From Macrostomum lignano (lineage: Eukaryota): DNA of 64,000 nucleotides. Below are positions 25,942 through 58,167 of this stretch, piece after piece. Location: contig NIVC01000073.1 of NCBI GenBank assembly GCA_002269645.1, positions 496,001 through 560,000 on the forward strand, given 5' to 3'. Below the pieces are notes generated by a model. It saw only the letters and a list, made by a program, of their open reading frames with translations, had not been told where the DNA came from and ran no database searches. Made by a program: the position numbers and the translations under genes. Positions within the stretch are counted from its first letter, which is position 1. The number at the start of each line of letters is the position of its first letter.

Positions 25942-25973
<32 letters not shown>

Positions 25974-26097
25974 ATATTCGTACACTAATGCTTCTACATC
26001 TTCTGCCCAGCAGCCCTCCGCGTCTGTTAACTATAACAGCAGCACGCCTGGACAGCAAGCTATCTATCACAACTCCAACTACTACGGTTCCGCATAA
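24568..26097 (+). CDS. Candidate Mastermind-like protein, exon 2 (spliced product about 638 aa)
   Basis: Acceptor TTTTGCTCCCGCAG at 24567 is phase 0, in frame with exon 1. The long open frame has poly-Q/P/N/A tracts and acidic hydrophobic patches (DLPEDLASLFEP, LPEIHLLDGELD). Confidence 0.75.
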
Positions 26098-27080: not shown

Positions 27081-27639
27081 TACTTTTGCTGAAATAGAAT
27101 GAGAAAACCATTAGTAACGATATTAACTACATGTGTAACTACTACTAATTATTAGTAGCTTATTTAGAGTTTTATGTGTGCACTTGTATTTTATAACTAT
27201 ATGTTTATTATATTTTTACATAATATGTGTTTTTGCATGTTGCTATATACATTTTTTCAGTTGTACATTAGTAGTATAAGTAGTATACTTTGTGCAGTTT
27301 ATTAATCGCTTAATGTGTTTGAGTAATAGCGTCTATTGTTGTGCCGCCCTGTTTGCGACGGATTTATTGCTTCAAAGTCCCCCGCCAACGGGCCGCTCTG
27401 CTCTGCTAAATGTTAGAAAATAGAGCCATTTTCTGTTAAAATATGATTATTTAGCATATTCGAATTTATCCTGCTTTTCGCCGCTCTGTTTCTATTTTTT
27501 TTGCCTCGCTCGCTGCCGCCTTCGCGTATTTAATTGCACAGTTTCACTTCTTTGCGATCGAACCAGTTACCTATCTTAGATTTCTAATAGTCTTTCCGTT
27601 TTAATGAATTCATGGACCTATCGCCAACCTCCCTGATCC

Positions 27640-28146
27640 TCCCAGATCCTCAGTTGCTGGGCCAGCCTCCCAGATCCTCAGTTGCTGGGCCAGTCTCCGA
27701 AAGTCCTCAGATGCTGGGCCAGCCTCCGAAAGTCCTCAGATGCTGGGCCAGCCTCCGAAAGTCCTCAGATGCTGGGCCAGCCTCCCAGATCCTCAGATGC
27801 TGGGCCAGCCTCCCAGATCCTCAGATGCTGGGCCAGCCTCCCAGATCCTCAGATGCTGGGCCAGCCTCCCAGATCCTCAGATGCTGGGCCAGCCTCCCAG
27901 ATCCTCAGATGCTGGGCCAGCCTCCCAGATCCTCAGATGCTGGGCCAGCCTCCCAGATCCTCAGATGCTGGGCCAGCCTCCCAGATCCTCAGTTTCTGGG
28001 CCAGCCTCCCAAAGTCCTCAGATACTGGGCCAGCCTCCCAAAGGCGTCAGATACTGGGCCAGCCTCTCAAAGTCCTCAGATACTGGGCCAGCCTCTCAAA
28101 GTCCTCAGATACTGGGCCAGCCTCTCAAAGTCCTCAGATACTGGGC
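27640..28146. repeat. 28-bp minisatellite, dispersed family locus 2
   Basis: Same unit and orientation as 10425-11125. Confidence 0.95.
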
Positions 28147-28969
28147 ATATTACCCACAAACGAATCACCCTCCCCCCTCTATTCTACGCACTAACCCAAA
28201 CCAAGAGAAGTATTTAAAGCTTGTTAATTAAAAGATCAATTCTTATTTTAACAGCGTATTATTGTTAACTGTTTTTAATCATGCAATCATTGAGTGGCGT
28301 GCTTAATTGTTTAATTTTTCTTTACTGTCATCCAAGATTCTTGGATGAATTCTTGGACGCGTGTAGCAGCACTCATCTTCCGCATTCTGCTAATGCCCTA
28401 TTATCTCAATGTTGTTGCCTCTCTCGCTTCGTTGTACGAGTATTATGATTGTTAACAAACGCATGAATATTTTAATAAACCGTTTGTTAAGCTGTTTGCC
28501 ATTGTTTGCGCAATATGCTATTTTCATTTGTGTTGTTGAAAAAATATTTATTGTCGTCTGTTGTCCCCTCCTATGATGGAAGTATGCCTATGAATGTACG
28601 TCTCTTTTTTGTTTATCAATTCTTGCTTAGAATTGCTATACTTACTACTTACTTCATATACGAATAAGTAGCTAAAAATGTACAACTGCCGCATTGTACA
28701 TAGACTTTTCAGCGGCCACCTACCAGTTTTGGCCACAGGTTTTATCTTAGAAACACAATTTTGCACTGTCAAATTATGTATATGTTAATGCTAAATATGT
28801 GAAATTCGCTTAAAATGTACGTTTTACAAAATGCAAAACATGCATGTTTTATTTACAAATATTCAATCCAAACGGAAGTTTTCTTAAGTCTCCTTTTGTT
28901 TTTTACTGTTGAATAATTATGCTTGCTATTGTGAATTTGGATTCTGTTGCATGTGGTTATGATGTGCTG

Positions 28970-30022
28970 CGCCAGCCTCCCAGTTCCTCAGTTGCTGGGC
29001 CAGCCTCTCAGATCCTCAGTCACTGGGCCAGTCTCCCAGATCCTCAGTTGCTGGGCCAGCCTCCCAGATCCTCAGTCACTGGGCCAGTCTCCCAGATCCT
29101 CAGTCACTGGGCCAGTCTCCCAGATCCTCAGTCACTGGGCCAGTCTCCCAGATCCTCAGTCGCTGGGCCAGCCTCCAAGATCCTCAGTCACTGGGCCAGT
29201 CTCCCAGATCCTCAGTCGCTGGGCCAGCCTTCCAGATCCTCAGTTACTGGGCCAGCCTCCCAGATCCTCAGTTACTGGGCCAGCCTCCCAGATCCTCAGT
29301 TACTGGGCCAGCCTCCCAGATCCTCAGTTGCTGGGCCAGCCTCTCAGATCCTCAGTCGCTGGGCCAGTCTCCCAGATCCCCAGTTGCTGGGCCAGCCTCT
29401 CAGATCCTCAGTCACTGGGCCAGTCTCCCAGATCCTCAGTCACTGGGCCAGTCTCCCAGATCCTCAGTCACTGGGCCAGTCTCCCAGATCCTCAGTCACT
29501 GGGCCAGTCTCCCAGATCCTCAGTCGCTGGGCCAGCCTCCCAGATCCTCAGTCACTGGGCCAGTCTCCCAGATCCTCAGTCGCTGGGCCAGCCTCCCAGA
29601 TCCTCAGTTACTGGGCCAGCCTCCCAGATCCTCAGTTGCTGGGCCAGCCTCTCAGATCCTCAGTCGCTGGGCCAGTCTCCCAGATCCTCAGTTGCTGGGC
29701 CAGCCTCTCAGATCATCAGTTGCTGGGCCAGCCTCCCAGATCCTCAGTTTCTGGGCCAGCCTCCCAGATCCTCAGTTTCTGGGCCAGCCTCCCAGATCCC
29801 CAGTCGCTGGGCCAGTCTCACAGATCCTCAGTTGCTGAGCCAGCCTCCCAGATCCCCAGTCGCTGGGCCAGTCTCACAGATCCTCAGTTGCTGGGCCAGC
29901 CTCCCAGATCCTCAGTTGCTGGGCCAGCCTCCCAGAGTGTCAGTTGCTGGGCCAGCCTCCCAGAGTGTCAGTTGCTGGGCCAGCCTCCCTGTGTGTCAGT
30001 TGCTAGGCCAGCCTCCCAGTTG
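28970..30022. repeat. 28-bp minisatellite, dispersed family locus 3
   Basis: Same unit and orientation, about 37 copies. Confidence 0.95.
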
Positions 30023-31546: not shown

Positions 31547-31897
31547 ATGTCCTCGTCTCAACCAGCTTGTCGACTCAGCTCGGGTTCGAGTCTTGTCAAG
31601 CTTGAACCGGTTGGCGTCGGCGGAGGTATGAACAGCGCCGCCTCCGACGCCTCCGACGCCTCCTTGCTAATGTTCAATTCGGTTGATTATTATTCGCAGC
31701 CGAGCTGCCTAGTGACCGGTTCGAATAGGGGCGATTGTATTGTTGGCCAGGTGGGCGGGACGGTGCCAGCCTCGGGTCTGGTGGCCGCTCACTACACTGA
31801 CGATGAGGATCAGCCTATGGTGACAGATCAACACGATGACGGTATCGATGCTGACTTGCCGTTGATCTCGTCGGCTCTGGTGGCAGATTACAGTCAG
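31547..31897 (+). CDS. THR: Thyroid hormone receptor, exon 1 (A/B domain)
   Basis: ATG at 31547 (MSSSQPAC...). Donor CAG|GTGAGT is phase 0 and matches the acceptor at 32477. Confidence 0.65.
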
Positions 31898-32477: not shown

Positions 32478-32905
32478 ACAAGCCTGTCCTGTAGCCAGCA
32501 GCAGCAGCAGCAGCATCAGCAGCACTATGCACAACAATCGGATTCCTTCTACGCAATTCCAACCGCAATGCAGCCAACCCTGCAACTGCCCGCCTCGCAA
32601 CAGCATCAGCACATTCATCATCATCAGCATCATCAGCATCATCAGCATCATCACCAGGGTCAGCTGCGAATTCAAGGCCCGATGCCACAGCCGCCGCCGC
32701 CGCCGCCGCCGCCGCTGTACGCACACGACGGGACGCTGACCGCAGTGGCAGCAGCGGCTGTTCCCAACGCCGCCACCGGCTGCTTCCTGCCGGCCTCGCC
32801 GCCGAACTCGTCGGTTTCGTCGTCGACTTCACCGACGGCGACTCCATCTGGCCTGATGCAGCAGCAGCAGCAGCGTCTTCAAGCTCAGTCAATCTACCTG
32901 CATCC

Positions 32906-32940
<35 letters not shown>

Positions 32941-33216
32941 TTGCGTCAATGCTGCCACCTAGAAGCAACACAGTCTATCTGACGCCTTCGTCTTCCATGA
33001 CAGCAGCTTCGAGTGCTGCTGCTGCTGCTGCTGCTGCTGGCCGTCAGCGAAGCCAGACGGTCAGCGGCGGCAGCGGCGGAGGCAGCAGCAGTGGTGGCGT
33101 CGGAGGAGGCAAACGAAGTCCCAGTCAGAAGCAGCAGCAGCAACAGCCGAGTACAACTACTCAAGACGAAAGCTCCGCTGCCAAAAATGGCCGCCGAGGA
33201 AAAACGAGAAACGGAA
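32478..33216 (+). CDS. THR: Thyroid hormone receptor, exon 2 (poly-Q/H/P/A A/B domain)
   Basis: Acceptor TTTTCACAAACAG (phase 0), open frame TSLSCSQQQ...GKTRNG, donor GGAA|GTGAGT (phase 1) matching the exon 3 acceptor. Confidence 0.8.
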
Positions 33217-33321
33217 GTGAGTGCACCCGTTATGAGCTGGTTTTATTCACAAGGAGTCTGTTTTTTAGTTTTTTGGTGGCTTTGTGGGATGAATGAGTTA
33301 AACTGTTCTGCGTTTTCGTAC

Positions 33322-34330
33322 AGTCATACAGTGGTTTGTCATTGCTCTCCATAATTGGGTCATACAGTGGTTTGTCATTGCTCTCCGTCATTGGGTGATA
33401 CAGTGGTTTGTCATTGCTCTCCGTCATTGGGTGATACAGTGGTTTGTCATTGCTCTCCGTCATTGGGTGATACAGTGGTTTGTCATTGCTCTCCGTCATT
33501 GGGTCATACAGTGGTTTGTCATTGCTCTTCATAATTGGGTCATACAGTGGTTTGTCATTGCTCTCCGTCATGGGGTCATACAGTGGTTTGTCATTGCTCT
33601 CCATCATTGGGTGATACAGTGGTTTGTCATTGCTCTCCGTCATTGGGTGATACAGTGGTTTGTCATTGCTCTCCATAATTGGGTCATACAGTGGTTTGTC
33701 ATTGCTCTCCGTCATTGGGTGATTCAGTGGTTTGTCATTGCTCTCCGTCATGGGGTCATACAGTGGTTTGTCATTGCTCTCCATAATTGGGTGATTCAGT
33801 GGTTTGTCATTGCTCTCCGTCATGGGGTCATACAGTGGTTTGTCATTGCTCTCCGTCATGGGGTCATACAGTGGTTTGTCATTGCTCTCCATCATTGGGT
33901 GATACAGTGGTTTGTCATTGCTCTCCTTCATGGGGTCATACAGTGGTTTGTCATTGCTCTCCGTCATTGGGTGATACAGTGGTTTGTCATTGCTCTCCGT
34001 CATGAGGTCATACAGTGGTTTGTCATTGCTCTCAGTCATGGGGTCATACAGTGGTTTGTCATTGCTCTCCGTCATTGGGTGATACAGTGGTTTGTCATTG
34101 CTCTCCTTCATGGGGTCATACAGTGGTTTGTCATTGCTCTCCGTCATGAAGTCATGCTGTGGTTTGTCATTGCTCTCCGTCATGGGGTCATACAGTGGTT
34201 TGTCATTGCTCTCCGTCATGAAGTCATGCTGTGGTTTGTCATTGCTCTCCGTCATGAAGTCATGCTGTGGTTTGTCATTGCTCTCCGTCATGGGGTCATA
34301 CAATGGTTTGTCAATACCCCATACAATGGT
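33322..34330. repeat. 36-bp minisatellite in TR intron 2
   Basis: Unit CATACAGTGGTTTGTCATTGCTCTCCGTCATTGGGT, about 28 copies. Confidence 0.95.
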
Positions 34331-34831
34331 CGGTCATTGCTTCGTCATGGGGTCATTGGGTCCTATTGTGAGCCTTCAACGAAGTAATTTTATATCGCTG
34401 TTACTACATACTTTTATACAAAGGTCTGTTTCAGCCAGTTTCCCAGCTTGCATGTAAATCGAGTTTAACAAGCGTCATCCGTCATTGCTTTTAGGGGTAG
34501 CATTTGCTCATCAATTTTTCTTTCACGAATTTTCGTCCCTACATGTATTCGGTGCAGCAGCTGTCAGCTGCTATGGACTATTGCTGTCACAGTATTCGTT
34601 GTGCTCCCAAACTGATTACGTAACGCCGAGGTTTGTTTAACTGATTGCAAGCTGTTGCGTCAAGGCCTTGTTTACTACGACAGTTTTTTCGTATCCATGG
34701 CCGAACTTGCTGCTTTTTGTAGATCTGAGAAATTCAACATCTGTTCTCGGGGCTTTCTGGGAGCCGTACGAAATTATTTATGGGCTGATAATAAATGACA
34801 TGTTGATCTGCCTCTACTCAAATACGAGAAT

Positions 34832-35088
<257 letters not shown>

Positions 35089-35100
35089 TCACACGCGCAG

Positions 35101-35216
35101 GCACGCCCTACATCCCAAGCTACATGGACCTGTCAAATGGACCCGAGCCGTGCATTGTGTGCAACGATGCCGCCACAGGATATCATTATCGTTGCATGAC
35201 CTGCGAAGGCTGCAAG
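35101..35216 (+). CDS. THR: Thyroid hormone receptor, exon 3 (zinc finger 1)
   Basis: [38 protein letters not shown]: TR-specific YIPSY.D motif, GYHYRC.TCEGCK and an EGCKG P-box. Confidence 0.97.
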
Positions 35217-35840
35217 GTGAGCTACTAATCATGTATTGCGACTACCTTGATATGTATTGTCGCACGATTGTCGGTGGATTTGATTTACATCCATAAGTGC
35301 CAACCCCATAGGTTTACCTATTCAAAAATCTTATTTTAAACAGTTCTTGCTCGTTAACCTTTTTTCCTTCTCTCCCTCAATCTATTTACTGCCGCGCATA
35401 TTACGTAACCGAATTTCATACAGTGTGCATATAGAATGCGTGCCGACCCCAGATTGCGTTGACAAGAGAAAGGACAAAATTCGAAATTCGAAACGAAAGA
35501 AAAGAGAGAGAGATTATATATAGAGAGAGAAAATAAGAAAAGGTTTTTATTGGCAGGTTCGTGACCTCGGCCAGTTTAAAACCTGCTTGTTGTTATTGCG
35601 TTTCAATTCTGCTTTTAGGGTTGGTGGGGTGGGTAAGGTGCAGCAACGCTCGATCGTTCTCAACGTGTCTTTTCCTGTGTTTTTCGCAGTGGCCTCCTTA
35701 GCTAGTTTGTAGCTGTTACACAATCTGGTTCCGAATCACAGGAAATTTATAGTCAATACAATTCTGAATAAATTTTTGTACTTTTAATAGTATATTCTGT
35801 AATTTGTAGTGTATTTCATCAAGATACTGTGACATAGGTC

Positions 35841-36255
35841 GTGGTTAACTCCGGTCATTCAGGTGTCACAGTAGTTAACTCAGGTCATTCAGGTGTCATA
35901 GTAGTTAACTCAGGTCATTCAGGTGTCATAGTAGTTAACTCAGGTCATTCAGGTGTCACAGTAGTTAACTCAGGTCATTCAGGTGTCATAGTAGTTAACT
36001 CAGGTCATTCAGGTGTCACAGTAGTTAACTCAGGTCATTCAGGTGTCACAGTAGTTAACTCAGGTCATTCAGGTGTCATAGTAGTTAACTCAGGTCATTC
36101 AGGTGTCATAGCAGTTAACTCAGGTCATTCAGGGGTCATAGTAGTTGCCTCAGGTCATTCAGGTGTCATAATAGTTAACTCAGGTCATTCAGGTGTCATA
36201 ATAGTTAACTCAGGTCATTCAGGTGTCATAATAGTTAACTCAGGTGTTATAGTAG
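35841..36255. repeat. 30-bp minisatellite in TR intron 3
   Basis: Unit GTAGTTAACTCAGGTCATTCAGGTGTCA(C/T)A, about 14 copies. Confidence 0.95.
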
Positions 36256-36370
36256 TCGATTCTAGTTCTATTGGTTTTTACTCTAGTAGTAGATTACTCT
36301 TAGTAGTCAAATGCTTAAAATCAATTTTTTAAAACAACATCAAGCACCGCGTGATCATTATTTATTGCAG

Positions 36371-36512
36371 GGCTTCTTCCGACGAACTATTCAGAAGAAT
36401 TTGCAATACCACTGCAAATGGAACGAGAGCTGCCAGATTGACAAGAACACGCGCAACCAGTGCCAGCAGTGCCGGTTTAGAAAGTGCCTGGCAATGGGCA
36501 TGGCTGCCGACT
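36371..36512 (+). CDS. THR: Thyroid hormone receptor, exon 4 (zinc finger 2)
   Basis: [47 protein letters not shown]. Acceptor TTGCAG, donor GACT|GTAAGT (phase 1). Confidence 0.97.
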
Positions 36513-36533
36513 GTAAGTCTGACTGTTGGATTT

Positions 36534-37630
36534 CAGAATTGGGACCTGTGATCCCATACTGATCAGAATTGGGACTTGTGATCCCATACTGATCAGAATG
36601 GGACCTGTGATCCCATACTCAGAATGGGACCTGTGATCCCTACCTCAAAATGGGACTTGTGATCCCTACCTCAAAATGGGACTTGTGATCCCATACACAG
36701 AATGGGACCTGTGATCCCTACCTCAAAATGGGACTTGTGATCCCTACCTCAAAATGGGACTTGTGATCCCATACTCAGAATGGGACCTGTGATCCCATAC
36801 TCAGAATGGGACTTGTAGTGTATTTCTTGTGATAGAGTACAGAATGGGACCTGTGATCCCTACCTCAAAATGGGACTTGTGATCCCATACTCAGAATGGG
36901 ACCTGTGATCCCTACCTCAAAATGGGACTTGTAGTGTATTTCTTGTGATAGAGTACAGAATGGGACCTGTGATCCCTACCTCAAAATGGGACTTGTGATC
37001 CCATACTCAGAATGGGACCTGTGATCCCTACCTCAAAATGGGACTTGTGATCCCTACCTCAAAATGGGACTTGTGATCCCATACTCAGAATGGGACCTGT
37101 GATCCCTACCTCAAAATGGGACTTGTGATCCCATACTCAGAATGGGACCTGTGATCCCATACTCAGAATGGGACCTGTGATCCCTACCTCAAAATGGGAC
37201 TTGTGATCCCTACCTCAGAATGGGACCTGTGATCCCATACTCAGAATGGGACCTGTGATCCCATACTGATCAAAATTGGACTTGTGATCCCATACTCAGA
37301 ATGGGACTTGTGATTCCTACCTCAAAATGGGACTTGTGATCCCATACTGATTAGAATGGGACTTGTGATCCCATACTGATCAGAATGGGACTTGTGATCC
37401 CATACTGATCAGAATGGGACTAGTAACCCCCCTTAATAAATACCTGGACTGGGGGCCTGTGACACCCCTCTTAATGAATCCGGACTGGGGGCCTGTGACA
37501 CCCCTCTTAATGAATCCGGACTGGGGGCCTGTGACCCCTCTTAATGAATCCGGACTGGGGGCCTGTGACCCCCCTCTTAATGAATCCGGACTGGGGGCCT
37601 GTGACCCCCTCTTAATAAATCTGGACTGGG
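36534..37630. repeat. Two minisatellite families in TR intron 4
   Basis: About 24-28-bp AATGGGAC(C/T)TGTGATCCC(A)TAC.. units at 36534-37420. About 33-36-bp CTTAATGAATCCGGACTGGGGGCCTGTGACCCC units at 37430-37630. Confidence 0.92.
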
Positions 37631-37729
37631 AACTCTTGATTTATTGATTCCATAGAAAAAATCATAGGGACTTACATAAACTCTCAAAATGAGTTCCCAA
37701 TGCTCCCTCTCCCCCCCCCCCCATCGCAG

Positions 37730-38064
37730 TGGTGCTCAACGAGAGGCAGCGAGTCGCCAAGCGGAAGCTCATCGAAGAAAATCGACAGCGTCGAAGCGCC
37801 GGCGAGCCTTGCAAGAAGCCGTCGGCAAAAGAGGAACTCCCCGCATCAGCGTCGGCTGCGTCGGCATCGGCTGCTCCTGGCGTCGGCGGCGGCTTCAGCT
37901 GCTGCGGCTCCGAGGACTCCTGGGACATCGGCGACGACGATCGAGCGATCATCGACGGCTTGGCCGCCTCCTATCGGCTGGCGTGGCCGACCCGTCTTGG
38001 ACAGTCACAGGCGCTGCCGTTGCCACTGTCGTCGTCAGATGAAATTAGCGGCGACGGTTTCGGG
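37730..38064 (+). CDS. THR: Thyroid hormone receptor, exon 5 (T/A box, hinge, helix 1)
   Basis: LVLNERQRVAKRKLIEENRQRR matches TR LVLDDSKRLAKRKLIEENR. Acceptor CATCGCAG (phase 1), donor GGG|GTAAGT (phase 0). Confidence 0.95.
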
Positions 38065-38086
38065 GTAAGTCATGCTGTTCAAACAC

Positions 38087-38490
38087 TATTTTCGATACAT
38101 ATCGGGGAAATTAGTGAATTCCTGTATTGCATTTTCGATGCATATCGGGAGCATTAGTGAATTCCCTTATAGCATTTTCGATACATATCGGGGGGCATTA
38201 GTGAATTCGCTTATAGCATTTTCGATACATATCGGGGACATTAGTGAATTCCTGTATTGCATTTTCGATACATATCGGGGACATTAGTGAATTCCTGTAT
38301 TGCATTTTCGATACATATCGGGGACATTAGTGAATTCCTGTATTGCATTTTCGATACATATCGGGGACATTAGTGAATTCCTGTATTGCATTTTCAATAC
38401 ATATCGGGGGCATTAGTGAATTCGCTTATAGCATTTTCGATACATATCGGGGACATTAGTGAATTCCTGTATTGCATTTTCTCGGGGACA
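38087..38490. repeat. 43-bp minisatellite in TR intron 5
   Basis: Unit ATTTTCGATACATATCGGGGACATTAGTGAATTCCTGTATTGC, about 9 copies. Confidence 0.95.
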
Positions 38491-38800
38491 TAATTAAAAT
38501 AAGTTTTATTTTCGATACATATAGTTGACGCAATTAAACTACTGTTTATTCGATGCTTTTTTCGATACATATGCATGCATTGGTAATTTCAATCCGTAAG
38601 AGTTACGTAACGTTAACGTAATTTAATTATTATCTTCGAGACATTTCAGGAAAGTTATTGATATCAAGTTTGTGTTAGAAGTACGTGTATTTAGCACAAG
38701 TATTACATAATTAATTTTAGCAGGGCATTAATTTAGCGGAGGAATTCAAATATGCTTTTACGCTACACTAACAGTAGTTTTAGCTAGGGTAAATGCTATA

Positions 38801-39388
38801 CTGTCCGTCAAAAGTTCCGGAACCCTTGCTACAATGTCTTCTAGCGGACATAATTTCAGTCCGTTTCAATTGTAACTTGATTCAAATGAAAGCTGCGGAT
38901 CTCAGCTCCATGATGTGGTCAAGAAAAAGTTTATTCGAAGGAGCGCGTGTGAACAGGCCAGTGTTATGTACATAAAGGTTAGAGAAAAAAAGTGAGTAAA
39001 AGACAAACAAGCAATTGACTCTCCCATGAAAGCTGACTGCACAAGAATCCATAAGAGCCTGTTGATTTCAACACAAGTTTTGGCCATAGACTAATGTTAG
39101 CCAGGCTGAACACTGCGCGCAAACCGATTCCTTCCCATGTGTGTTTGCTCCATAGACTCAGCAACCATAGACAATTGCTTGTTTGTCTTTTCCTCACTTT
39201 TTTTCTCTAACCTTTATGTACATAACACTGGCCTGTTCACACGCGCTCCTTCGAATAAACTTTTTCTTGACCACATCATGGAGCTGAGATCCGCAGCTTT
39301 CATTTGAATCAAGTTACAATTGAAACGGACTGAAATTATGTCCGCTAGAAGACATCGTAGCAAGGGTTCCGGAACTTTTGACAGACAG
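38801..39388. mobile_element. MITE with 217-bp terminal inverted repeats (Tc1/mariner-like, TA flanks)
   Basis: 38801-39017 is the near-perfect reverse complement of 39172-39388. Flanked by TA|CTGTC...GACAG|TA, with a 154-bp unique core. Confidence 0.85.
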
Positions 39389-39424
39389 TATAATTAGAGC
39401 GGGGGAAGATCGCTAATTTTGGAA

Positions 39425-40309
39425 CTTCGTTACTAGTAAAGAGCAGTTGGGCTCTTGGGCAAGCATCCATTGCGGGCCGTGGTTTTGTCTCGCATAGAGA
39501 CGCCGAACCGCAGTACCCCCTGTGACATGTCTCTGCCCGGCTGAAAGCTTGTAATGAGTTAGTAGGCTGGGTTAGAGGGTAATAGTCGATCAGGATCAGT
39601 CGATCAGTCGATAGTTGTGGGTAGCTGTATAGGAAGGCAGGCCTATAGCTGTTCCAGTTGATGCTCTGACGGTCTCCCTCGCAGTGTCCTCTGGTGAACA
39701 GGCCAGCGATCCTATTAAAGCTGGAGTTTGCCAAAAGCAGGACTGAGTCTGACCAGGACGGGGCCGTTGGCACGGCCACTATAAAAATGGCGGGTGGACG
39801 AAGCAAAGGGTGAAACAGTCCCGGCGATTAGCCCTCCTGCCGCTTCAAAGTTAAGAGACTGTCTGGCAAAGAGTACCCGGGGTTTAGTGGGTGGGGAGGT
39901 TCCTTCGGGTCGCCACGGCCGTGGGGGCATTGGTCAAATGACCAATTTTATTGGCTTACTAACCCGGTGAAGGCACGGGCTTCCCTGATTGGTTCACTCA
40001 ACCCCCTCTAGCCCCGGGGAGGTTTAGATTTGAGTTTGGAGTAGGTGTGACGCCCCGACAGTTGGGGGTAGGGCCCGCCCTCAGCCCGACTGGTGTCGCC
40101 TGCTCGGCTTGATTGGTCACAGTCTCTTTAGCCTAGCCTAGAAGCTTAGTGTACCTGAGTACACTCCTAACCTGGAACCTAATTTATTCCTAGTGGCGTA
40201 AGAGCCTGTTCAATGGCTCAGGCGCCTTATTTTATGATGCCATGATTTTATGATTTTATGACTTAATTTAGTTTAGTTAGTTAGTCTTGGGCAAGCATCC
40301 ATTGCGACA
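39425..40309 (-). mobile_element. Probable solo-LTR-like insertion in TR intron 5
   Basis: GC-rich non-coding block. Minus strand begins TGTCGCAATGG and carries CCAAT and AATAAA motifs. A 22-bp direct repeat TCTTGGGCAAGCATCCATTGCG lies at 39453 and 40285. The left boundary is not canonical. Confidence 0.4.
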
Positions 40310-41040
40310 CTTCTAACTTAGGAATTAACCGAAGAATTCAAGGTAAAAGGGGAATAAAGGAGATAGGAATAGGAATAGGAATAAAATAGGCTTGCACAAA
40401 GAGGAGTCTTGCCTCGAAAACATTGGGAGTCTTGCCCAAAAGCTCATAAGGGAGTATAGGAAATTAATGTAAACAACTTTTGTACAGCTTGCGTTAACTA
40501 ATTTGTGTTCTCTTTATAAACTTGTGTTTAAATTACAATTGGTGTCCTGACTCACTTCTTTAATATCTAAAAACTAGAATTAGGGAAATCAGGGACCTGG
40601 TGCCAGCGAAATCTACCAATATACCCAAATAATCCACTAAGTTCTAAGAGTAGACAAAACCAGTAAGCCTAGACCGCAGGTACCAAGCTTGTCCATAATG
40701 CTTTAATTTGAGCAACTAATTCCGTGCATAACTTTACCAAGATTATCCATTCTGCCTCGCAGAACCGCGCAACCAATCAACCGAGTTGTCGTCGTCAACA
40801 ATTTGGACCGACCTCGCCGTGTCCAGATTTAGTAGATCAGCTCTCGCGTCATGTGGTCTGCTCTCTAATGAGCAAGGTCTGTTATTATCCGTCTAAGATC
40901 ATTAAATAACGCGTTTTTTCTATATTTCTACTATCAGTAGTGTAGTTTGTAACAGTAGTAAAAAATGCTATACTATTATCTAAATATACTAAATCTCTAA
41001 TATTTGTATGCTTGTCCATAATATTATACTATTTTTACAG

Positions 41041-41178
41041 TCCGAGCAAGTTGAAGATGATGACGTGGCCGTGTACAGACAGGAGGCGCCAAGCGTTTTC
41101 GACAGCCTGACCCAAGTGATGTCGAGTGCAGCCTCCGGGGTTGTCAAGTTCGCCGAAGGAGTGGTCGGGTTTCGTTCG
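41041..41178 (+). CDS. THR: Thyroid hormone receptor, exon 6 (LBD helix 3)
   Basis: SEQVEDDDVAVYRQEAPSVFDSLTQVMSSAASGVVKFAEGVVGFRS aligns to TR [25 protein letters not shown]. Phase 0 at both ends. Confidence 0.88.
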
Positions 41179-41587
41179 GTAAATATTTTGGTTTCGGTTT
41201 GCTGGTTGGATGATAGACTTCATGGTGCTATCCAATGGAATGCCGCGTACATATGATGACATCGTACATGATAGCAGAGCTGAAGACTCAATAAAGTCAG
41301 GGATGGCATCATAGCAGAGCTGAAGACTCAATGGAGTCAGGGACGGTGTGAAGTGTACACTGCTTGCCTATCTGAGTGTAAGCTTGTACATTTAGTAATT
41401 CATTGCATGTACATCTTATCGGTTGTATGAGGTGGGGTTGAGGTGGGGTTGTTGGTGGGGATCATAGCAGAGCTGAAGACTCTATGGAATCACGGATGGC
41501 ATCATAGCAGAGCTGAAGAATCTAAGCTGACATCAAAATAGGACACGATGACCTCTTACCGATCGTATTTTACCTTTTTCCAAACAG

Positions 41588-41828
41588 CTAAGCCAGACGG
41601 ACCAGTTCCAGCTGCTCAAGTGCAGCTGCATGGAGATCCTCTGCCTTCGATCGGCCTGTCGATATATTCAACAGCGTGACAGGATCAGCGGTAGCAGCTT
41701 CATGACGTTCGGCGGCGACGAGACTGGAAGCGACAAACTGCTCAGCGACTTCCTCGAGCCTCTGTGGGAATTCGCATCTAGCCTGAACCGACTCGAACTC
41801 GACCAGCAAGAAGTGGCCCTGCTGACAG
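41588..41828 (+). CDS. THR: Thyroid hormone receptor, exon 7 (LBD helices 4-8)
   Basis: LSQTDQFQLLKCSCMEILCLRSACRY aligns to TR [26 protein letters not shown]. Also LWEFASSLNRLELDQQEVALL. Confidence 0.95.
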
Positions 41829-41919
41829 GTGAGAGGCGCCTTTTCATATCTCGATTGGAATCATTCTAATAAACTCACAAAACTATATTTTTTCATTCCG
41901 AATCTCGCCGTTGTTGCAG

Positions 41920-42068
41920 GAGTCCTACTGATGCAGAGCGATCGCATGGGTCTGCAGCATCCTGACCGGATTGAGTCGATGCAGGACGCCATTTTGAGCG
42001 CATTCAAGCGCTACGTGACGGAGAAACGGTGCAGGCGAGGCGTTGACTGGGCTAAGATTCTTATGAAG
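41920..42068 (+). CDS. THR: Thyroid hormone receptor, exon 8 (LBD helices 8-10)
   Basis: GVLLMQSDRMGLQHPDRIESMQDAILSAFKRYV...WAKILMK aligns to TR AVLLMSSDRPGL...IEKYQD..LLAFEHY...WPKLLMK. Confidence 0.95.
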
Positions 42069-42626
42069 GTAAGAGGTCTAGGTGTTAAGTGTGTTAATTC
42101 TGTTAGTAGCGTGTAATTGAATAGGGCTGCGAGCACGCTGACGCAACGCCTTCGGCAAAATTGTCCTACAATCAGCGCTAACGGCAATTCTGCCTATTTC
42201 GCTGACTCCTGAGGACATGCAAGCTAAGCTATTACTCTACGCAGGCACGCACTCACACACATTCACACAGGGTGTAAAGCGACCCATTGATTTTCTTATC
42301 GGTCAGACATGTACACTCTGCGCCTTGGGGGGGTTGGCCCTGGATGCATTAACCACTGACCCGCTGAGGGGTTCTCCAGCTAGTCCTCTATACTATTTTT
42401 AGTAACAATGATTGGCGGCTAAGCAGTAGGGCGGGGGAGGGCAGAGCGGCTTATCGCTTATCGCGTCTAAGCGCCACGACCCTTGGTTCGATAGCGTGCT
42501 GGAAGGTTGTCGCGCGATTCACACGACAAGAGTGCAAATATCTGACGATTAGAAAGTCAATGGCCGCTGTACACCTGATGTGCTGATCTGAGGAGTCTGA
42601 GGATGCTTAACGCTCCACGCCCCCAG

Positions 42627-42848
42627 GTGACGGACCTGCGCACCATAGTGACTCGCCAAGGCGATGCCGTGCTGTCAATGCGATTCGACGCCCCGTCGAG
42701 TTCCAACGCTGTGCCCGAACTGTTCAAAAAAGTGTTCTGCGAGACAGCAGACGACGCCTGCAACGTGGAGGTGTCCAACGACGGTGGAGGAGGTGGAGAT
42801 GGCGACGAGTGCTTAGCCGGGTTGCAGCTCAAAGCTGAGCTCGCGTGA
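42627..42848 (+). CDS. THR: Thyroid hormone receptor, exon 9 (helices 11-12 plus C-terminal extension)
   Basis: VTDLRTIVTRQGDAVLSMRFDAPSSSNAVPELFKKVFCE aligns to TR [37 protein letters not shown]. Stop at 42846-42848. Summed exons are 2433 nt, giving 810 aa. Confidence 0.93.
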   Translation: MTDLRTIVTRQGDAVLSMRFDAPSSSNAVPELFKKVFCETADDACNVEVSNDGGGGGDGDECLAGLQLKAELA

Positions 42849-45739: not shown

Positions 45740-46790
45740 GCGCTCGACGTTGCCGTTCTGCTCCGGGCAGTAGACCGCTGTTCTTTTGTGCTCGACCGCT
45801 TTGCCGTCTAGGTAGTCGTCGAACTCACGCCCAAGCTAGGGTCCGTTGTCTGTCGTGATGCTTTTTCGAGTGCCCCATCTCGTCCAGGTGATCTCGAGGA
45901 AGTTGATGATGGACTTCGTGGTGACAGTTTCCACCAGCGCGACCGCGGGCCAAACGGCTAAATTTGTCAACCAGGGCGATCGCGAATCGTTGGTGCCTTG
46001 GTGCCCATTTGAACTCGCCGCATCCTCCCACGCTGTCACCGGTGCTCGTGGTGCTCATCAGCGGAATGCTCGGTCGCATGGATTTGCCAGCTTGTGCGTA
46101 AGCCTTGCCCCTAGTCTGTCGGCGGCCCCCCCCCCCAATGGAAAATCCTGCGTACGCCACTGTGGCGAAGCTCTTCTTGGATCACCGTCGCTTGGCCTCG
46201 GGCGATGCAGCCGTCTCTTCACAGGTACAACTCGTCTTTGACACTGTGAAACTCCTGAAGCTCCGGAGGCAGTTGCTTGCATGCGGGCCATCCCTCCTTG
46301 ATGAAGCGCGTGACCGCTTGCAAGGTTGTATCTCTCGCGGTCGCTTCGCGGACTTCGTTGAGGCTGACTATCGGTGCGAGTTGAGTCATCAGGATCTGGT
46401 TGACTTCGAGTTCATCCACTTTGCTGTTCTGCTCGTTCTCGCTGCGCGTTTTTGGATGCTGCCTTGACAGTAGATCGGCGACTGTGTTTTCGCTGCCGCG
46501 GTGGTAGCGGATGTTGACCAGCGGGTACGCGCGCAGTCGTTCAGTCCAGCGTAGGATGCGCACCGGCCGCAACCCTTGGCTTCCCGCCGTCAGCAGCGTG
46601 CTGTGGTCCGTGTAGACTTTCACTGTCCTGCCGTAGGTAAACAGGTGCCATTTTTCGACTGACCAGACGACTGCAAGCGCCTCCTTTTCGCCAACCGAGT
46701 AGTTGTATTCGGTTGATGCAACTAGTCGGCTCACCGCCTTGGACCTGCGCCAGCACAGCTCGGTTTTATGGGCACTGGAGTGTGTTTGTG
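45740..46790 (-). mobile_element. Decayed Gypsy (Mag-like) pol 3' part: RNase H, linker and integrase core
   Basis: NYSVGEKEALAVVWSVEKWHLFTYGRTVKVYTDH...NTVADLLSR (RNase H). FAIALVDKFS...TTKSIINFL...ITTDNGP...PEQNGNVERF (integrase). Frameshifts and stops are present. A CAGTGGCGTA MITE end interrupts at about 46110-46155. Confidence 0.9.
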
Positions 46791-46792
46791 CG

Positions 46793-46793
<1 letters not shown>

Positions 46794-46860
<67 letters not shown>

Positions 46861-48712
46861 TAGCCTCAGTGCCCGCACCGGGAAGGCAGTCTCGAGGAAC
46901 GAACAGACCTCCCTGGGCTGGATCCAGAGAGGTTGGTCGACATGGCAGTGCAGTCGAAAATGTGCGTAAGGGTTTCGTCGTCCCGGCCGCATTTGCGGCA
47001 CAGATGTGAGACCGACGGGTCAATTTTGGCCTGGTACGAGGCGAGCAGTTTGCAGTGTCCAGAGCGCAGCTGAGCGAGGGTGGTGCGCTGACGACGACAA
47101 AGGAGGCTCTCGGGGGTTCTGATATCCGTGTGCACGAGTGCCGAGGACGGGGTTTGTCAGCTGATTGATGAGGAACTCGCTGACGAGAGCCGTATGGATC
47201 GCCGAGTGGGCGCGGCGAAGAGAGGCGAGATCCGTGATGGGAGCAGGATAAAAGCGGATGCGAGCGAAGATGGCGTGGCAAAAGGAACGGAGGTTGCAGC
47301 GGATGGAGCGACGTGGCTGAGGGTCTTGGAAGAGCTGGTGATTAGGATGCCAAGGGGCCAAGCAGGAGGCCCAGAACTGAGACCCGAGGAGCTCGGAGTG
47401 CGCTTTGACTGGAAGCATGGCACATTCGGAGTGAAGATGCTCGATTTGTGTACAGCTGTGGCACCCGGTGATTATACGCAGCGCCATATTCTGACAGCGT
47501 TGGAGCAGGTTCCAGCTGGTCTCGCTGAGCAGGGGCGACCAGACCGGAGCACAGTAATTGAGAAGGGACCTGCAGATGGCTTTGTAAGTCACGCTGAGAG
47601 TTTCTATATCTTGGCCCCATTGCGTCCAACAGAGGACACGGAGGATGGTGGTATTAGCGCGGATTTTGTGGCTGGTCAGCTTAGCATGCTCGTGAAAACT
47701 AGGAAGAAGTGGGTCAAAAGTGACTTCACGAACCCGAAGGATCTTCGGGTTTGTGAAGTAGAGCAGAGGAGGCGAGCCGCGCAGAAAAATCGGCGGAGAC
47801 GAGCGGAATTCATGAGTGGTGCTGGTAAAGATGGTGGCAGTGGATTTGCCCGGTGAGAGCGGAAGACTTTTGGCTTAGAGATTGCGGCTGAGCTGATAGA
47901 GGTACGGTTAAATGAGCTCGGACAGTTTGTGGACGACGGACCGCGAGCACAGATGGAGATGTCGTCGGCATACTGCGTGATGTGCAAGTTTGGCGGCGGA
48001 CACGGAAGGTCGGACACGAAAAAGCGAACAGGAGAGTAGATAAAACTCCGCCTTGTAGGACTCCGACATGCAGCGGGCGGGATTTGGAAAGAATAGAGCG
48101 ATATTCCACTGTTGCAGAGCGACTCTCAAGATAAGCATGCAACCATGAGCGAACCAGAGTGCGCGGCAGAGACGACTGGAGCAGCATCTCGCAGAGCTCG
48201 GTATGAGAGACCTTGTCGAACGCTTTTTGAAGATTGAGAGCGACCAGTAGGCTGCACAGAGCTGGCTTCTGGGTGTTAAGGCCATCGCTGATAAAGGTGG
48301 GCAGGCTGAGCAGAGCTGTGGTGGTGGAATGACCCGCACGGAAACCATGTTGCCAGCTTGGCAAGCTAGGCTAGCGATTCTTGGAAAATGGGGAGAAGCG
48401 CTTTCTCCAAGCCGAGAGAGGGGTCTTTGCCGGCTTTAGGCAGAGGGACGACTTTGGCGGAGGTCCAGGTGGATGGGAAAATACTGGTGCTGATACACAG
48501 GTTGAAGAGCATGCAGAGAAAGGCTATGCCATTAGGACCAAGGTGCTTCCACATCGCCGGGCAGAGGCCGTCGGGTCCTATAGCTTTGGAGGCAGCGGAG
48601 CTTTTGATTGCGCGGTGGAGTTCATTCGGAGTGAGGACCGGGCAGTCTGAGGACTCAAGATTGCGGCAATTTCGGCTGATCTGCCGGTCGCGCTGGGAGC
48701 ATGGAGGCTTGA
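46794..48712 (-). mobile_element. 5'-truncated non-LTR retrotransposon (I/Jockey-group-like) with (CA)n 3' tail
   Basis: RT motifs W..AKVVPLPKAGKDP, QHGFRAGHSTTTAL, LQKAFDKVSH, GVLQGGVLS.LLF, QYADD and YKAICRSLLNYCAPVW. C-terminal TLAQLRSGHC...CRKC...HIFDC. The (TG)n tract at 46794-46859 on + lies right after the ORF end. Frameshifted. Confidence 0.9.
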
Positions 48713-48714: not shown

Positions 48715-50957
48715 TGAATTGGGGAATTGGGGAATTGGGGTTCTAGAATTGGGGAATCTAAGGAGAGTTACTATAATTAGCATAGATACAATTTACATTA
48801 CTTTCTCAACACTCCCACTAAATGAAATAGTCCATGTATGCGATTACAAAAAATGTCGAGTTTTCACTAAGTTCTGATTAAGATTTTAGTAAATTCAAAC
48901 TCCTCTGTTACGTTTTAACAACCCCAAGCATTGTTCGCAGTTGCATGAACTTGTCCTTGGGTAACGGCTTAGTAAGCACATCTGCAACCATATCGCCAGT
49001 TGGACAGTAGGCCACTCGAATAGTCCCATTGCTGACGGCTTCGCGAATTAAGTGATGTCTGATATCAATGTGCTTTGTCCGTCGGCTTCCAGCAGAAATC
49101 TCAGAAAGAGCAATAAATATTTCCTTGGTTGTCCTCGTAGATCACAGTGGGTCGCTCGGATCCTGATCTTTCAAGATCACTTAGTTGCCGCCGCAGCCGC
49201 ATGGCTTCTTGTGCTGCAGAGCTCAGCGCGACGTACTCAGCTTCCATTGTTGAGAGTGTGACGGTTGATTGCTTCTTGCTAAGCCAGCTGATATCGCCCC
49301 CCCAATAGCTTAAACACGATGCCAGAAGTGGAATGTCGATCATCTACGTCACTCGCCCAGTCCGCATCAGAATAGCCGATCAAGTCCTCTACACCAGAGT
49401 TGTACTCTAGGCCAAAGTCGATTGTTCCCTTTAGGTATCGGAAGATTCGTTTCACTGCGGTTAGATGTATTTCTCTTGGTTTGTTGTTGAACTTAAAGAC
49501 AACTCCCACTGCATACGAGATGTCTGGACGCGTAGCAGTTGCTGCATAGAGCAAGCTTCCGACCAATGACTGGTAAACTGTTGAGTCAACTGGCTTGCTG
49601 CTCTCGTTGTATTTGGCTAGTTTTACGTTGAAATCCATCGGAGTTAGGGCTGGGTTCGCCTCTGCAAGTCCATAGCGTTCAAGCAGTTTGGTTATGTACT
49701 GCTTCTGATTAAGCTTGATACAGCGGTCCTCCTTGTTTGCTTGGATGTTGGCATATAGGCAGTAGTGCAACTCGCTCATGTCTTTTATCTTGAACCTTTT
49801 GGAAAGTTCATCCTTCATTTGTTGAATTTCCACCAGACTCTTCGCAATTAGTATTAGGTAGTCAACGTATACGGCTAGGGTAGTGAGATCCTCCCTTTTC
49901 CTAATGAAGACATAACTGTCGGCTGAGCTTTCCTCGAAGTTAATTCTGGCTAGGTAGTCGCAAAAGGCTTTGTTCCAGCAACGGGGCGCTTGCCATAAAG
50001 CGTCCATAAAGCGACTTCTTTAACTTACAGACAAGTTCTTCCTCTCCTGGCTTGACGAAACCCGGTGGCTGCTCCATGTAAATTTCTTCGCACAATTCGC
50101 CGAACAAAAAAGGCAGTTTTAACGTCCATCTGATGAACGTGTAATTCATATTTAACCGCTAATGCCAACATTGCGCGAACAGATAGGAATTTTACAACTG
50201 GCGCTAAGGTCTCTTCATAATTAATGCCAAACTTCTGTGAATAGCCCCTGGCTACAAGTGTTCCCTTAAAACGATATAACCTCCCATCACCGTCATACTT
50301 GACCTTAAAGATTGCCTTGCGTCCTTCAGGTAGTCGTACCAGATCCCAGGTGTCATTCTCCATCAGGAATTATATTCTGAGTCAGCGGCAGCTTTCCATT
50401 TGCTTCGCATAGTCACCTTTCAGGGCTTCGTCAATCGTTTTCGGTTCGATAATTTCGGTCATTCTGAACGCAAAGTGTTTGGCTTCGGATGCCACTTTTG
50501 CACCTTCATATTTGAGACGATCAAGGGCTCTCCTTTCTCGTTGAGGATATCGCGTCTGATCAGTTTCTGTCGACACCGACTGTTCCTGTTCTTGACCTGG
50601 TGTCTCTTCTGTCATATTGGGCTCCAAGTTGAGTTCCAAGTCAAGTTCCAAGTTGAACCAGCTCGCGTCCTTGTCTCTTGTTCTATTCTTTGAGGTTCCA
50701 AAATAAGTCTCGTTGAACACCACATCGTAGCGGATGACTGTCTTTCTCAACCTTTCATCAAACAGTCTGTAGCTTCTTCCATCCGTATTGTAGCCAACGA
50801 ACCATAGGATGGAGGCAGAGGCTGATTTAATCGCTTTACTTTCAGGCATTGACGAATTTATACAGTATCGTTCTAGAAAGTTCTAGAATTGGGAAATCTA
50901 AGGAGAGTTACTACTCGTATAATTAGCATAGATACAATTTACATCACTTTTTCAACA
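48715..50957 (-). mobile_element. Internally deleted Ty1/Copia element (integrase C-terminus, RT, RNase H)
   Basis: LTR remnants begin TGTTGA at 50957 and 48811 on the minus strand, with a PPT at 48812-48822. FVGY..DGRSYRLFD (integrase); NDTWDLV.LP.GRKAI, YEETLAPVVK, QMDVKTAF, YVD.LIL, TRPDISYAVG, GYSDADWA (RT); LSTMEAEYVA, EDNQG (RNase H). Confidence 0.93.
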
Positions 50958-56276: not shown

Positions 56277-56841
56277 GTAGCTATCATAAGTAATTTGATT
56301 TCTAAATTTTAGTTTCTGAAACGCAACCTATTACTCCATTAACAAGCATAATGAAGTGAAATCTGGGGCTCTATCTATCGATCGATCGTGCGTTAAGAAA
56401 GTAATAGTCATTCCGCTGTACATTCTGCGTGTGGGTGCCTGAACCTTTAACCACAGCCGATCATCAGTGTGTTATTGTATGTGTTATCAGTATGTCATCA
56501 GTGGGGTTTTCAAAGGTAACCAATGTCGCTTTGTTGAAGCTGAAATCAAAGAAGCTCCTTCAAAATGAGAACAGAGGGAAGGCAGTCGACCAGATACGTC
56601 GAGTGCGTAGCCTAGTAGTTCGAGCATCGGACTTATCGAACTCACGACTGGAAAGCTTAACCGGCTTAACCGGCTGAGCTTTCGGTTGCACAGTTGTCCA
56701 TTAGGGCAGGTGAATTTATTATTAAACCATAATATTCGTTATCCAAGCATAGTGTCACAAATCTAGTGCTTCCTGAACACCCCCACTAGCCGTATTTCCT
56801 TCTCGAAAATTGACTGTTTTCATATTGTCTTTAATTTCCAG

Positions 56842-57181
56842 AGCCTGCGGTCGTCTTATGCTTAGCAGCCAGCGTCACCCAATCCGCCTAGAGCCGTGTG
56901 GTCACATAGTCTGCGGTCGCTGCTCGGAGTTAATCGCAACCACATCCGTCGCCTCATCAGCCGTCTGTTCCGTCTGTGGAGTCGCCGTGCAATCTCAACA
57001 ACCCGACTCTCTGCTCAAACTGGAGGTGATAAAATTTGCCGAATCAAGTCTGGCTGTAGCGACGGTAGCAAACTCTGGATTTGACGACCATGAGATTCCA
57101 GCACCTCTCATTTCTGAAGCCAACAACTCGCTAAAGTCATCAGCCGGTCAACGGCTGCTCGTTAAACAGAAAGGTTTCGAG
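56842..57181 (+). CDS. RING finger/coiled-coil protein, exon 2 (C3HC4 RING)
   Basis: The spliced sequence reads C-RA-C...LEPCGHIVCGRC...CSVC. Acceptor TTTCCAG (phase 2), donor GAG|GTACGA (phase 0). Confidence 0.85.
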
Positions 57182-57239
57182 GTACGAGTAAATAGTTGAA
57201 ACGTGGCTTACTGTTTTTGCTGCTACACCTCTGCTGCTA

Positions 57240-57500
57240 CCTCCTGATGCATCAACCACCGCTCTCTCCTGATGCATCAAACTCTGCCCTTTACTGATAC
57301 ATCAACCTCTGCTCTCTCCTGATGCATCAACCTCTGCTCTTTACTGATACATCAACCTCTGCTCTCTCCTGATGCATCAACCTCTGCCCTCCTGATGCAC
57401 CAACCTCTGCCCCTCCTGATACATCAACCTCTGCTCTCTCCTGATGCACCAACCTCTGCCCCTCCTGATACATCGACCTCTGCTCTCTCCTGATGCATGC
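57240..57500. repeat. About 24-26-bp minisatellite in RING gene intron 2
   Basis: TGAT(G/A)CATCAACCTCTGCTCTCTCC units. Confidence 0.9.
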
Positions 57501-57522
57501 TTTTTATGAGATATTAGAGCAG

Positions 57523-58167
57523 CCCAATGGCAACGCATCCGATTCTACCCTCCCGATAAACCCTGCGAGTTCGTTTCCGTGCGGCAGCCGAATTTATTTT
57601 TGGCCAAATGCACAGAAATCCCTGGTGGGATGTTCGATTCCCACCCGAGAGTACCAACTCCCAAGACCACTCTACTCGCACAAACATTCGCAGGACTTGG
57701 TAAATGGGTGTCCACTGCAGCAGCAGTCACAGCCGCAGCATCAGCAACAGAAAGAGTACCAGCAGCAGCAGTCTCGAACAGACTTAGGCACTAAGCAATG
57801 GTACAGCCAATTAGACATGATCGCCTTCAGAATGCGCAGTCTGGAATCGTCGCTTGAACAGCTGAACTCCGAGCTGAAGGACCTGACAGTCCGACAAGCC
57901 GCTGAAGTTGACAAGGAGCGTCAGCTGCGCCGCGCCGAGGCGGAGGCGCGCGACAAGCTGGAGCGTCAGCAGGAAGAAATTCGCCGGCTGGTTGAGCAGC
58001 GAACTGCGTCGAGCGAAGCGCAGGCTCAGTTTCAGACTCAGGTGGAAGCGAAACGGCGAGCAATTCAAGTGGCTTTAGCGGCGCAGCACTCGGTCAGCAT
58101 TGAGCTCAGTCGGTTGCAGACACTGTGCGGAGGCGGCGGCGGTATTGACGGTGGCGGAGTCGCCTGA
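57523..58167 (+). CDS. RING finger/coiled-coil protein, exon 3 (coiled coil; total about 401 aa)
   Basis: Heptad-like region LDMIAFRMRSLESSLEQLNSELKDL...IELSRLQTL, stop at 58165-58167. The exact acceptor is uncertain by a few nt. Confidence 0.75.
   Translation, partial: PNGNASDSTLPINPASSFPCGSRIYFWPNAQKSLVGCSIPTREYQLPRPLYSHKHSQDLVNGCPLQQQSQPQHQQQKEYQQQQSRTDLGTKQWYSQLDMIAFRMRSLESSLEQLNSELKDLTVRQAAEVDKERQLRRAEAEARDKLERQQEEIRRLVEQRTASSEAQAQFQTQVEAKRRAIQVALAAQHSVSIELSRLQTLCGGGGGIDGGGVA

Follow-up and report, generated by a model that had tools for sequence, protein, structure and literature searches.

Gene structure

The window analyzed here is a 64,000-nt stretch of the Macrostomum lignano genome (contig NIVC01000073.1, positions 496,001 to 560,000 of the forward strand; assembly GCA_002269645.1). 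It contains, on the plus strand, a nuclear-receptor gene with eight coding exons (32568-42848) and GT-AG splice sites throughout. Sequence comparisons identified this gene as MlTRb, the second thyroid hormone receptor (TR; NR1A) paralog of this free-living flatworm. The ligand-binding domain (LBD) encoded by its last exons shows inverted charges at both positions of the coactivator charge clamp of activation function 2 (AF-2). The spliced model was 663 aa long, and its frame was open across the eight exons. The coding exons, including those of the DNA-binding domain (DBD), as well as one candidate exon further upstream are listed below; residue numbers here and throughout are those of TRbeta.

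32568-33216, plus strand: A/B-domain exon 1, starting at ATG 32568 (or continuing from an acceptor at 32478); Gln/His/Pro-rich, 216 aa; phase-1 end, donor GTGAGT
35101-35216, plus strand: DBD exon 1 (exon 2), with the TR N-terminal signature and the first zinc finger; P-box CEGCK at its end
36371-36512, plus strand: DBD exon 2 (exon 3), with the second zinc finger; same letters as the published MlTRb DBD
37730-38064, plus strand: hinge (T/A box) and helix 1 (exon 4)
41041-41178, plus strand: helix 3 exon (exon 5), with VVKFAEGVVGF at 41140-41172
41588-41828, plus strand: helices 4-8 (exon 6), LSQTDQFQLLKCSCMEILCLRSACRY...; groove residues F302, L305, K306, and C309 retained
41920-42068, plus strand: helices 8-10 (exon 7), GVLLMQSDRMGL...WAKILMK
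42627-42848, plus strand: last exon (exon 8), with helices 10/11 and 12, a 33-aa acidic C-terminal tail, and stop codon TGA at 42846-42848
31547-31897, plus strand: candidate extra 5′ coding exon, putative; ATG 31547, donor CAG/GTGAGT, in-frame join to the acceptor at 32478

The A/B domain was long as well as rich in Gln, His, and Pro, and the acidic tail directly followed helix 12. A 91-bp intron (41829-41919) preceded the exon for helices 8-10 and was absent from the paralog MlTRa. The introns of MlTRb consisted mostly of minisatellite (33323-34313, 35844-36245, 36533-37421, 37426-37630, and 38088-38481, with periods of 36, 30, 26/52, 36, and 43 bp), and many of these arrays gave long spurious open reading frames (ORFs) in several frames. 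In the intron before the first DBD exon, a perfect (TAC)85 microsatellite (34832-35087; 256 bp, 100% matches) ended 13 bp 5′ of the acceptor at 35101 and effectively took the place of the usual polypyrimidine tract region.

Identity as a thyroid hormone receptor

The DBD in the window was letter-for-letter the published MlTRb DBD, which Wu and LoVerde (2021) had extracted from the M. lignano genome (scaffold 73, scaf73; PMC8363021, supplementary file 3). MlTRb was published as a DBD only, with no protein accession for the gene (PMC8363021, supplementary file 6). Its LBD is absent from current protein annotations, and an exact look-up of the 663-aa model found no database record.

The predicted protein had two C4 zinc fingers with the P-box EGCKG, followed by a TR-type T/A box (DLVLNERQRVAKRKLIEENR). 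The sequence YIPSYMD stood directly N-terminal to the DBD and spanned the splice junction 33216/35101; the pattern (Y/G)IPSY(M/L)D before the DBD is a TR-specific N-terminal signature (Wu et al. 2007, PMC2045677). A nuclear-receptor LBD was found (Pfam PF00104, 1.8e-20), and it aligned from helix 3 to helix 12 with the crystal-structure sequences of TRalpha and TRbeta (phmmer). The LBD by itself scored equally against the solved structures of RARs and TRs (about 1e-29 to 1e-30, phmmer), and the TR assignment was therefore decided by the DBD and the signature. When the DBD and LBD were searched together, the best 120 full-length database matches were all TRs (E-values to 1e-113), with spiralian TRs at the top (~49% identity). 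In a neighbor-joining tree, MlTRa and MlTRb were sisters within the TR clade, and RAR-like sequences fell outside it. Identity as a RAR was rejected because the DBD, the YIPSYMD signature, the full-length matches, and the tree all pointed to TR. The same evidence confirms the name given to the gene in a first-pass annotation, which had been made from the letters of the window.

MlTRa, the sister gene, is represented by a full-length model (PAA84071.1; P0267), and another copy lies at locus L001 (NIVC01000985.1). The two paralogs were 92% identical in the DBD (99/108 compared DBD positions) and 63% identical over helices 3-12, and their intron positions were largely common.

Inversion of the charge clamp

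In helix 3 of MlTRb, the clamp position (K288) was occupied by Glu (GAA, 41155-41157), and Lys (AAG, 41146-41148) was found at position 285. Helix 12 read LFKKVF (42720-42737), with Lys at position 456 (AAA, 42726-42728) and again at the clamp position, E457 (AAA, 42729-42731). Position 453, which is Pro in other TRs, was Glu (GAA, 42717-42719). The residues of a TR-type AF-2 clamp were thus missing from both helices, with FAE in place of FAK and LFKKVF in place of LFLE(V/M)F.

Three independent alignments agreed that the Glu is the counterpart of K288 and that the second Lys is the counterpart of E457: one by phmmer against solved TR structures, ungapped through helix 3 and aligned through helix 12, and two by MAFFT. 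In the human TRbeta reference (461 aa), K288, E457, R282, and H435 were where expected, and its C-terminal half agreed exactly with a database TRbeta fragment. A register shift at either clamp position is implausible, judging from the sequences, because the three alignments agreed and were anchored by invariant residues (F286/A287 in helix 3; P452, F455, V458, and F459 in helix 12). A sensitive tblastn search of the 64-kb window for another exon that would supply a canonical helix 3 or helix 12 found none.

Among approximately 260 aligned NR1-type LBD segments, the helix-3 clamp residue was Lys in approximately 250, Arg in three, and Gln in two, and Glu was found only in MlTRb. The helix-12 clamp residue was Glu in 118 of the approximately 125 NR1-type LBDs in which helix 12 was aligned. 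Position 285 was Glu or Asp in 234 of the approximately 260 segments and Lys in both MlTRb and MlTRa. The first-pass annotation had called the Lys/Glu pair highly conserved, had read Glu for Lys288 and Lys for both L456 and Glu457, and had proposed an alignment with other TRs as a check. The counts and the codons bear out these statements, and the alignments, which were unambiguous at both clamp positions, showed inverted charges there.

Departures from the helix-12 consensus were also observed in other invertebrate TRs. The helix-12 core was off consensus in the oyster CgTR (QLLDLF), in Dimorphilus (QVANVF), and in TR fragments with LLNLF or LLLAIF, and the helix-12 Glu was missing from the Dimorphilus TR and from several of the fragments, as it is from MlTRb. 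Unlike MlTRb, however, all of these TRs with a degenerate AF-2 kept the helix-3 Lys, and none had a charge reversal at both positions. Schistosome TRs retained YLHELF and YFHELF, and a fluke-like TR (P0204) retained FAK and HELF. The possibility that the inversion is a generic flatworm feature was rejected, since these flatworm TRs keep the canonical residues.

MlTRa differed from both the canonical and the inverted state. Its helix 3 read VIKFARGIPGF, with Arg at 288, and its helix 12 read LLFMNIF, with Asn at 457 (Met-Asn for Lys-Lys) and Leu at 453. Lys285, Phe302, Gln435, and the loss of the helix-12 Glu were common to the two paralogs.

The residues at positions 285 and 453 bear on an alternative in which the clamp has moved rather than inverted. 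Lys285 and Glu453, each one turn N-terminal of the old sites, would then cap LxxLL coactivators in the normal orientation. Lys285 occupies a position that is acidic in most NR1-type LBDs, Glu453 replaces the Pro of other TRs, and the i-3 and i-4 positions lie roughly on the same helical face; in ERalpha, moreover, the residue four positions N-terminal of the helix-12 Glu is acidic. We nevertheless regard a shifted clamp as quite unlikely. Lys285 and Glu453 are not conserved together, since MlTRa has Lys285 but Leu453. At the peptide ends, the helix dipole would continue to be repelled by Glu288 and Lys456/Lys457, and Lys285 more probably forms an i/i+3 ion pair with Glu288.

Ligand anchors, groove, and divergence of the LBD

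The polar anchors of triiodothyronine (T3) and TRIAC in TRbeta, which we take to be R282, R316, R320, and H435, were only partly conserved in MlTRb: R316 and R320 were retained, R282 was replaced by Gly, and H435 was replaced by Gln. In TRbeta, R282 presumably anchors the T3 carboxylate, and H435 presumably anchors the 4′-OH. MlTRa had Cys at the R282 position and Gln at the H435 position; the remaining compared TRs retained Lys/Arg and His. Of the residues that we assume to line the coregulator groove, MlTRb retained the hydrophobic floor and K306 (V284, F302, L305, K306, C309, L454, and V458). The helix 10/11 stretch WAKILMKVTDLR was conserved as well.

The LBD of MlTRb was 47-50% identical to those of spiralian TRs (48% for Owenia TR), and the LBD of MlTRa was 54-57% identical to them (55% for Owenia TR). 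Spiralian TR LBDs were approximately 88% identical to one another (88% for Owenia vs. Lingula). On these identities, both Macrostomum LBDs are fast-evolving, MlTRb more so than MlTRa, and the MlTRb LBD is the fastest TR LBD in the comparison set. The earlier description of the gene as otherwise intact is consequently overstated, given the rate at which the LBD evolves and the replacement of R282 and H435.

Compared with vertebrate and lophotrochozoan TRs (human TRbeta, Owenia, Lingula, and chiton), MlTRb had the same EGCKG P-box, YIPSYMD signature, T/A box, LBD fold, groove floor, R316/R320, and helix 10/11 stretch. It differed from them by Glu instead of Lys in helix 3, Lys instead of Glu in helix 12, R282G, and H435Q, and further by its long Q-rich A/B domain and its 33-aa acidic tail.

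Selection and origin of the inversion

The ratio of nonsynonymous to synonymous divergence (dN/dS) between MlTRb and MlTRa was 0.069 in the DBD and 0.18 in helices 3-12, and it was near 0.8 in the hinge alone; with dS at 1.0-1.6, near saturation, these ratios are approximate. Because dN/dS was low despite the near-saturated dS, we conclude from the two sequences that both paralogs have long been kept by selection and that MlTRb is not decaying. The open frame and the LBD ratio thus agree with the first-pass annotation, which had argued against decay.

The same data argue against MlTRb being non-functional or an artefact, that is, either a recently silenced duplicate still without stop codons or a gene in which the two clamp codons are assembly errors. 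No protein model or transcript-derived protein matched the gene in the databases searched, and a protein-based survey of nuclear receptors omits it (PMC8363021, supplementary file 6). In addition, at least one gene copy in the same assembly, the L001 copy of MlTRa, carries an indel error or a genuine frameshift. Yet the 663-codon frame is open over eight exons with canonical splice sites, the dN/dS values of 0.07-0.18 extend over a divergence with dS above 1, and the same DBD was found independently on scaf73 by Wu and LoVerde. Errors in long-read assemblies are mostly indels, unlike two G/A substitutions that fall at two functional codons. We consider a silent or artefactual copy very unlikely.

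The lesion in the L001 copy of MlTRa (NIVC01000985.1) was a 1-bp deletion at approximately 18699 (GCGGGCG to GCGGCG), at the junction of EVALLA and GVLLMQ. It accounts for the frameshifted C-terminus of the GenBank model PAA73930 (P0057) when compared with the intact PAA84071 (P0267), and it is either an assembly indel or the mark of a decaying homeolog.

The codons of the two paralogs bear on the order in which the clamp residues changed. At position 457, AAA (Lys, MlTRb) and AAC (Asn, MlTRa) were one step apart, and AAA was one step from the ancestral GAA. At position 288, GAA (Glu, MlTRb) and AGA (Arg, MlTRa) were each one step from AAA (Lys). Because both paralogs are without the helix-12 Glu, the most parsimonious ancestor was already without Glu457. 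The helix-12 Glu was thus probably lost before the duplication, and the change from Lys to Glu in helix 3 probably came later and in MlTRb only. In the sequence of events that we propose, E285K and the loss of E457 would have occurred in the common ancestor of MlTRa and MlTRb and would have disabled AF-2 first. K288E would then have occurred in MlTRb alone and would have restored an i/i+3 ion pair with Lys285. The change from EFAK to KFAE in helix 3 would accordingly be an i/i+3 swap within one helix, K288E seeming to pair better with E285K than with helix 12. Most likely, therefore, the inversion arose stepwise, under relaxed constraint on an already-disabled AF-2. The reciprocal double swap proposed at first pass is not favored by the comparison, since Arg288 and Asn457 of MlTRa indicate that the two changes were probably not concerted.

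Functional interpretation

MlTRb appears to retain a typical TR DBD, the LBD fold, the helix 10/11 dimerization region, and the hydrophobic groove floor, all under purifying selection. By analogy with better-known receptors, the reading that we favor, and to which we give about an even chance of being correct, is that MlTRb would be a ligand-independent or differently liganded DNA-bound receptor. It would act by pairing with RXR, by competing with MlTRa for common sites, and/or by way of activation function 1 (AF-1).

The nearest parallel is the NR4A group (Nurr1, Nur77, and DHR38), which shares with MlTRb a reversed polarity of the AF-2 clamp. NR4A is a different subfamily, and its members have a hydrophilic coregulator groove and a filled ligand pocket, whereas MlTRb is an NR1A orthologue with conserved hydrophobic groove residues. 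As described in PMC10259986 (citing Wang et al. 2003), the reversed charge clamp of Nurr1 blocks typical coregulators, and activation takes place through its RXR partner; in NR4A receptors, activity comes from RXR heterodimers or other surfaces. On that account, a reversed clamp is not unprecedented. Reversed clamps in NR4A, degenerate AF-2 cores in some invertebrate TRs, and the MlTRb DBD itself were already known. The novelty of MlTRb seems to be that a genuine TR, kept under selection and with its hydrophobic groove preserved, carries opposite charges at the two clamp sites.

Data on the individual clamp residues point in the same direction. The TRbeta mutation E457A abolished NCOA binding but kept T3 and NCoR binding (PMC7351129). 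That mutation is an engineered single change in a hormone-binding receptor, whereas MlTRb naturally has Lys457 together with the helix-3 reversal and altered ligand anchors; a literature search on TRbeta E457K returned nothing relevant. Corepressor peptides, too, form bonds with the helix-3 clamp Lys/Arg, and PPARgamma K329A cuts NCoR affinity approximately 7-fold (PMC6925260). Among TRs with an altered AF-2 core, the oyster CgTR (QLLDLF) represses and is not activated by thyroxine (T4), T3, or TRIAC (PMC4692385).

From these precedents, the inverted clamp of MlTRb would be expected to block canonical docking of LxxLL coactivators, and docking of CoRNR-type corepressors would probably be poor. 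MlTRa (Arg288, Asn457), by the same analogy, looks coactivator-defective and corepressor-competent, and for MlTRb an impairment of both functions is predicted. The output of MlTRb would then pass through other surfaces: heterodimerization with RXR, as in Nurr1-RXR; competition with MlTRa at the same response elements; and/or the long Gln/His/Pro-rich A/B domain (AF-1). The first-pass annotation had stated that loss of either clamp residue abolishes AF-2, which is consistent with the loss of LxxLL docking expected from TRbeta E457A and Nurr1. Its suggestion of a constitutive repressor loses force, since corepressors likewise bind to the helix-3 Lys/Arg, as PPARgamma K329A illustrates.

The conserved groove floor bears on a further explanation, adaptive rewiring, in which the groove would still dock a peptide but the inverted charges would select a reverse-oriented or non-LxxLL partner, so that the coregulators of MlTRb would differ from those of MlTRa. 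In its favor are the conservation of the groove floor although both capping charges are inverted, the purifying selection on the LBD, and the fact that both reversed residues are single transitions kept in an intact reading frame. The DBDs of the paralogs are also near-identical, so a divergence in the choice of partner is possible. However, the two changes were probably not concerted, as judged from MlTRa. Packing of helix 12 and of the protein core also involves the groove residues, whose conservation is therefore no specific sign of a partner. No candidate partner was identified, and we know of no natural reverse-oriented AF-2 ligand. Rewiring is, in our judgment, unlikely. In its strongest form, this explanation would make MlTRb the first nuclear receptor in nature to combine a hydrophobic AF-2 groove with inverted capping charges and to select a reverse-bound or new non-LxxLL motif, a speculative claim that we hold to be improbable. 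If it were true, the two M. lignano TR paralogs would share DNA targets and recruit different machinery.

Several points weigh against our preferred reading of MlTRb as a receptor that is ligand-independent or differently liganded and acts through surfaces other than AF-2. The conserved hydrophobic groove would be unexpected if the AF-2 surface had simply been abandoned as in NR4A. Lys285 and Glu453, one helical turn from the old clamp sites, might rebuild a clamp of normal polarity. We infer the order of substitutions by parsimony on two sequences only, and with dS near saturation a recent relaxation of selection is still compatible with the dN/dS values. Finally, among 5.8 billion protein clusters, neither a predicted protein nor an assembled transcript matched the A/B, hinge, helix-3, or helix-12 exons of MlTRb.

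Genomic surroundings

Three other small genes were recognized on the plus strand of the window, all 5′ of MlTRb:

8392-8748, plus strand: SMIM14/DUF2615 gene; its ORF is identical to the sequence in M. lignano assembly GCA_002269645.1
12485-12952, plus strand: TMEM170 gene (PF10190, 1e-14)
19576-19953, plus strand: synaptobrevin/VAMP gene (PF00957, 3e-30); its exact ORF was absent from the protein collection searched

Positions 1-15000 of the window had a collinear second copy on NIVC01004325.1 / NIVC01002879.1 (L002/L003), with 83-94% nucleotide identity and an identical SMIM14 protein. This copy is probably a homeologous region, and it should carry a second copy of MlTRb.

Gln/Pro/Asn-rich ORFs of 149 and 516 aa with no Pfam match were found at 23868-26097 (plus strand), 5′ of the TR gene, and may represent exons that encode a nuclear protein of low complexity. 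Downstream of the TR gene, an ORF with a weak RING-finger match (E about 2e-4, which does not reach the Pfam cut-off) was followed by a coiled-coil-like ORF (56810-58167, plus strand), and the two may form one gene. Retrotransposon remnants with broken frames were located on the minus strand at 46219-48364 and 49279-50849. One of them had reverse transcriptase (RVT_1) and RNase H-like domains and enclosed a (CA)n-type run. The other was copia-type (RVT_2 and a retroviral-polymerase SH3-like domain). A 28-bp minisatellite family was present three times in the window (10416-11133, 27638-28146, and 28965-30019) and also in an intron of MlTRa (L001 17285-17568, approximately 90% identity), and it appears to be a genome-wide M. 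lignano repeat family. This family, the SMIM14 match, and the DBD identity all agree with the origin of the window from M. lignano.

Significance

The TR is the textbook hormone-switched receptor, and few functional pairs in the nuclear-receptor superfamily are conserved as well as its Lys/Glu clamp. MlTRb is a natural TR, apparently under selection, in which both clamp charges are inverted, and its sister MlTRa shows an intermediate state. The paralog pair would thus offer an evolutionary series in which to follow the loss or re-specification of the AF-2 surface in a ligand-activated receptor, a course that parallels NR4A. M. lignano is amenable to RNA interference and transgenesis, and the role of invertebrate TRs without canonical hormone activation is therefore directly testable in this flatworm.

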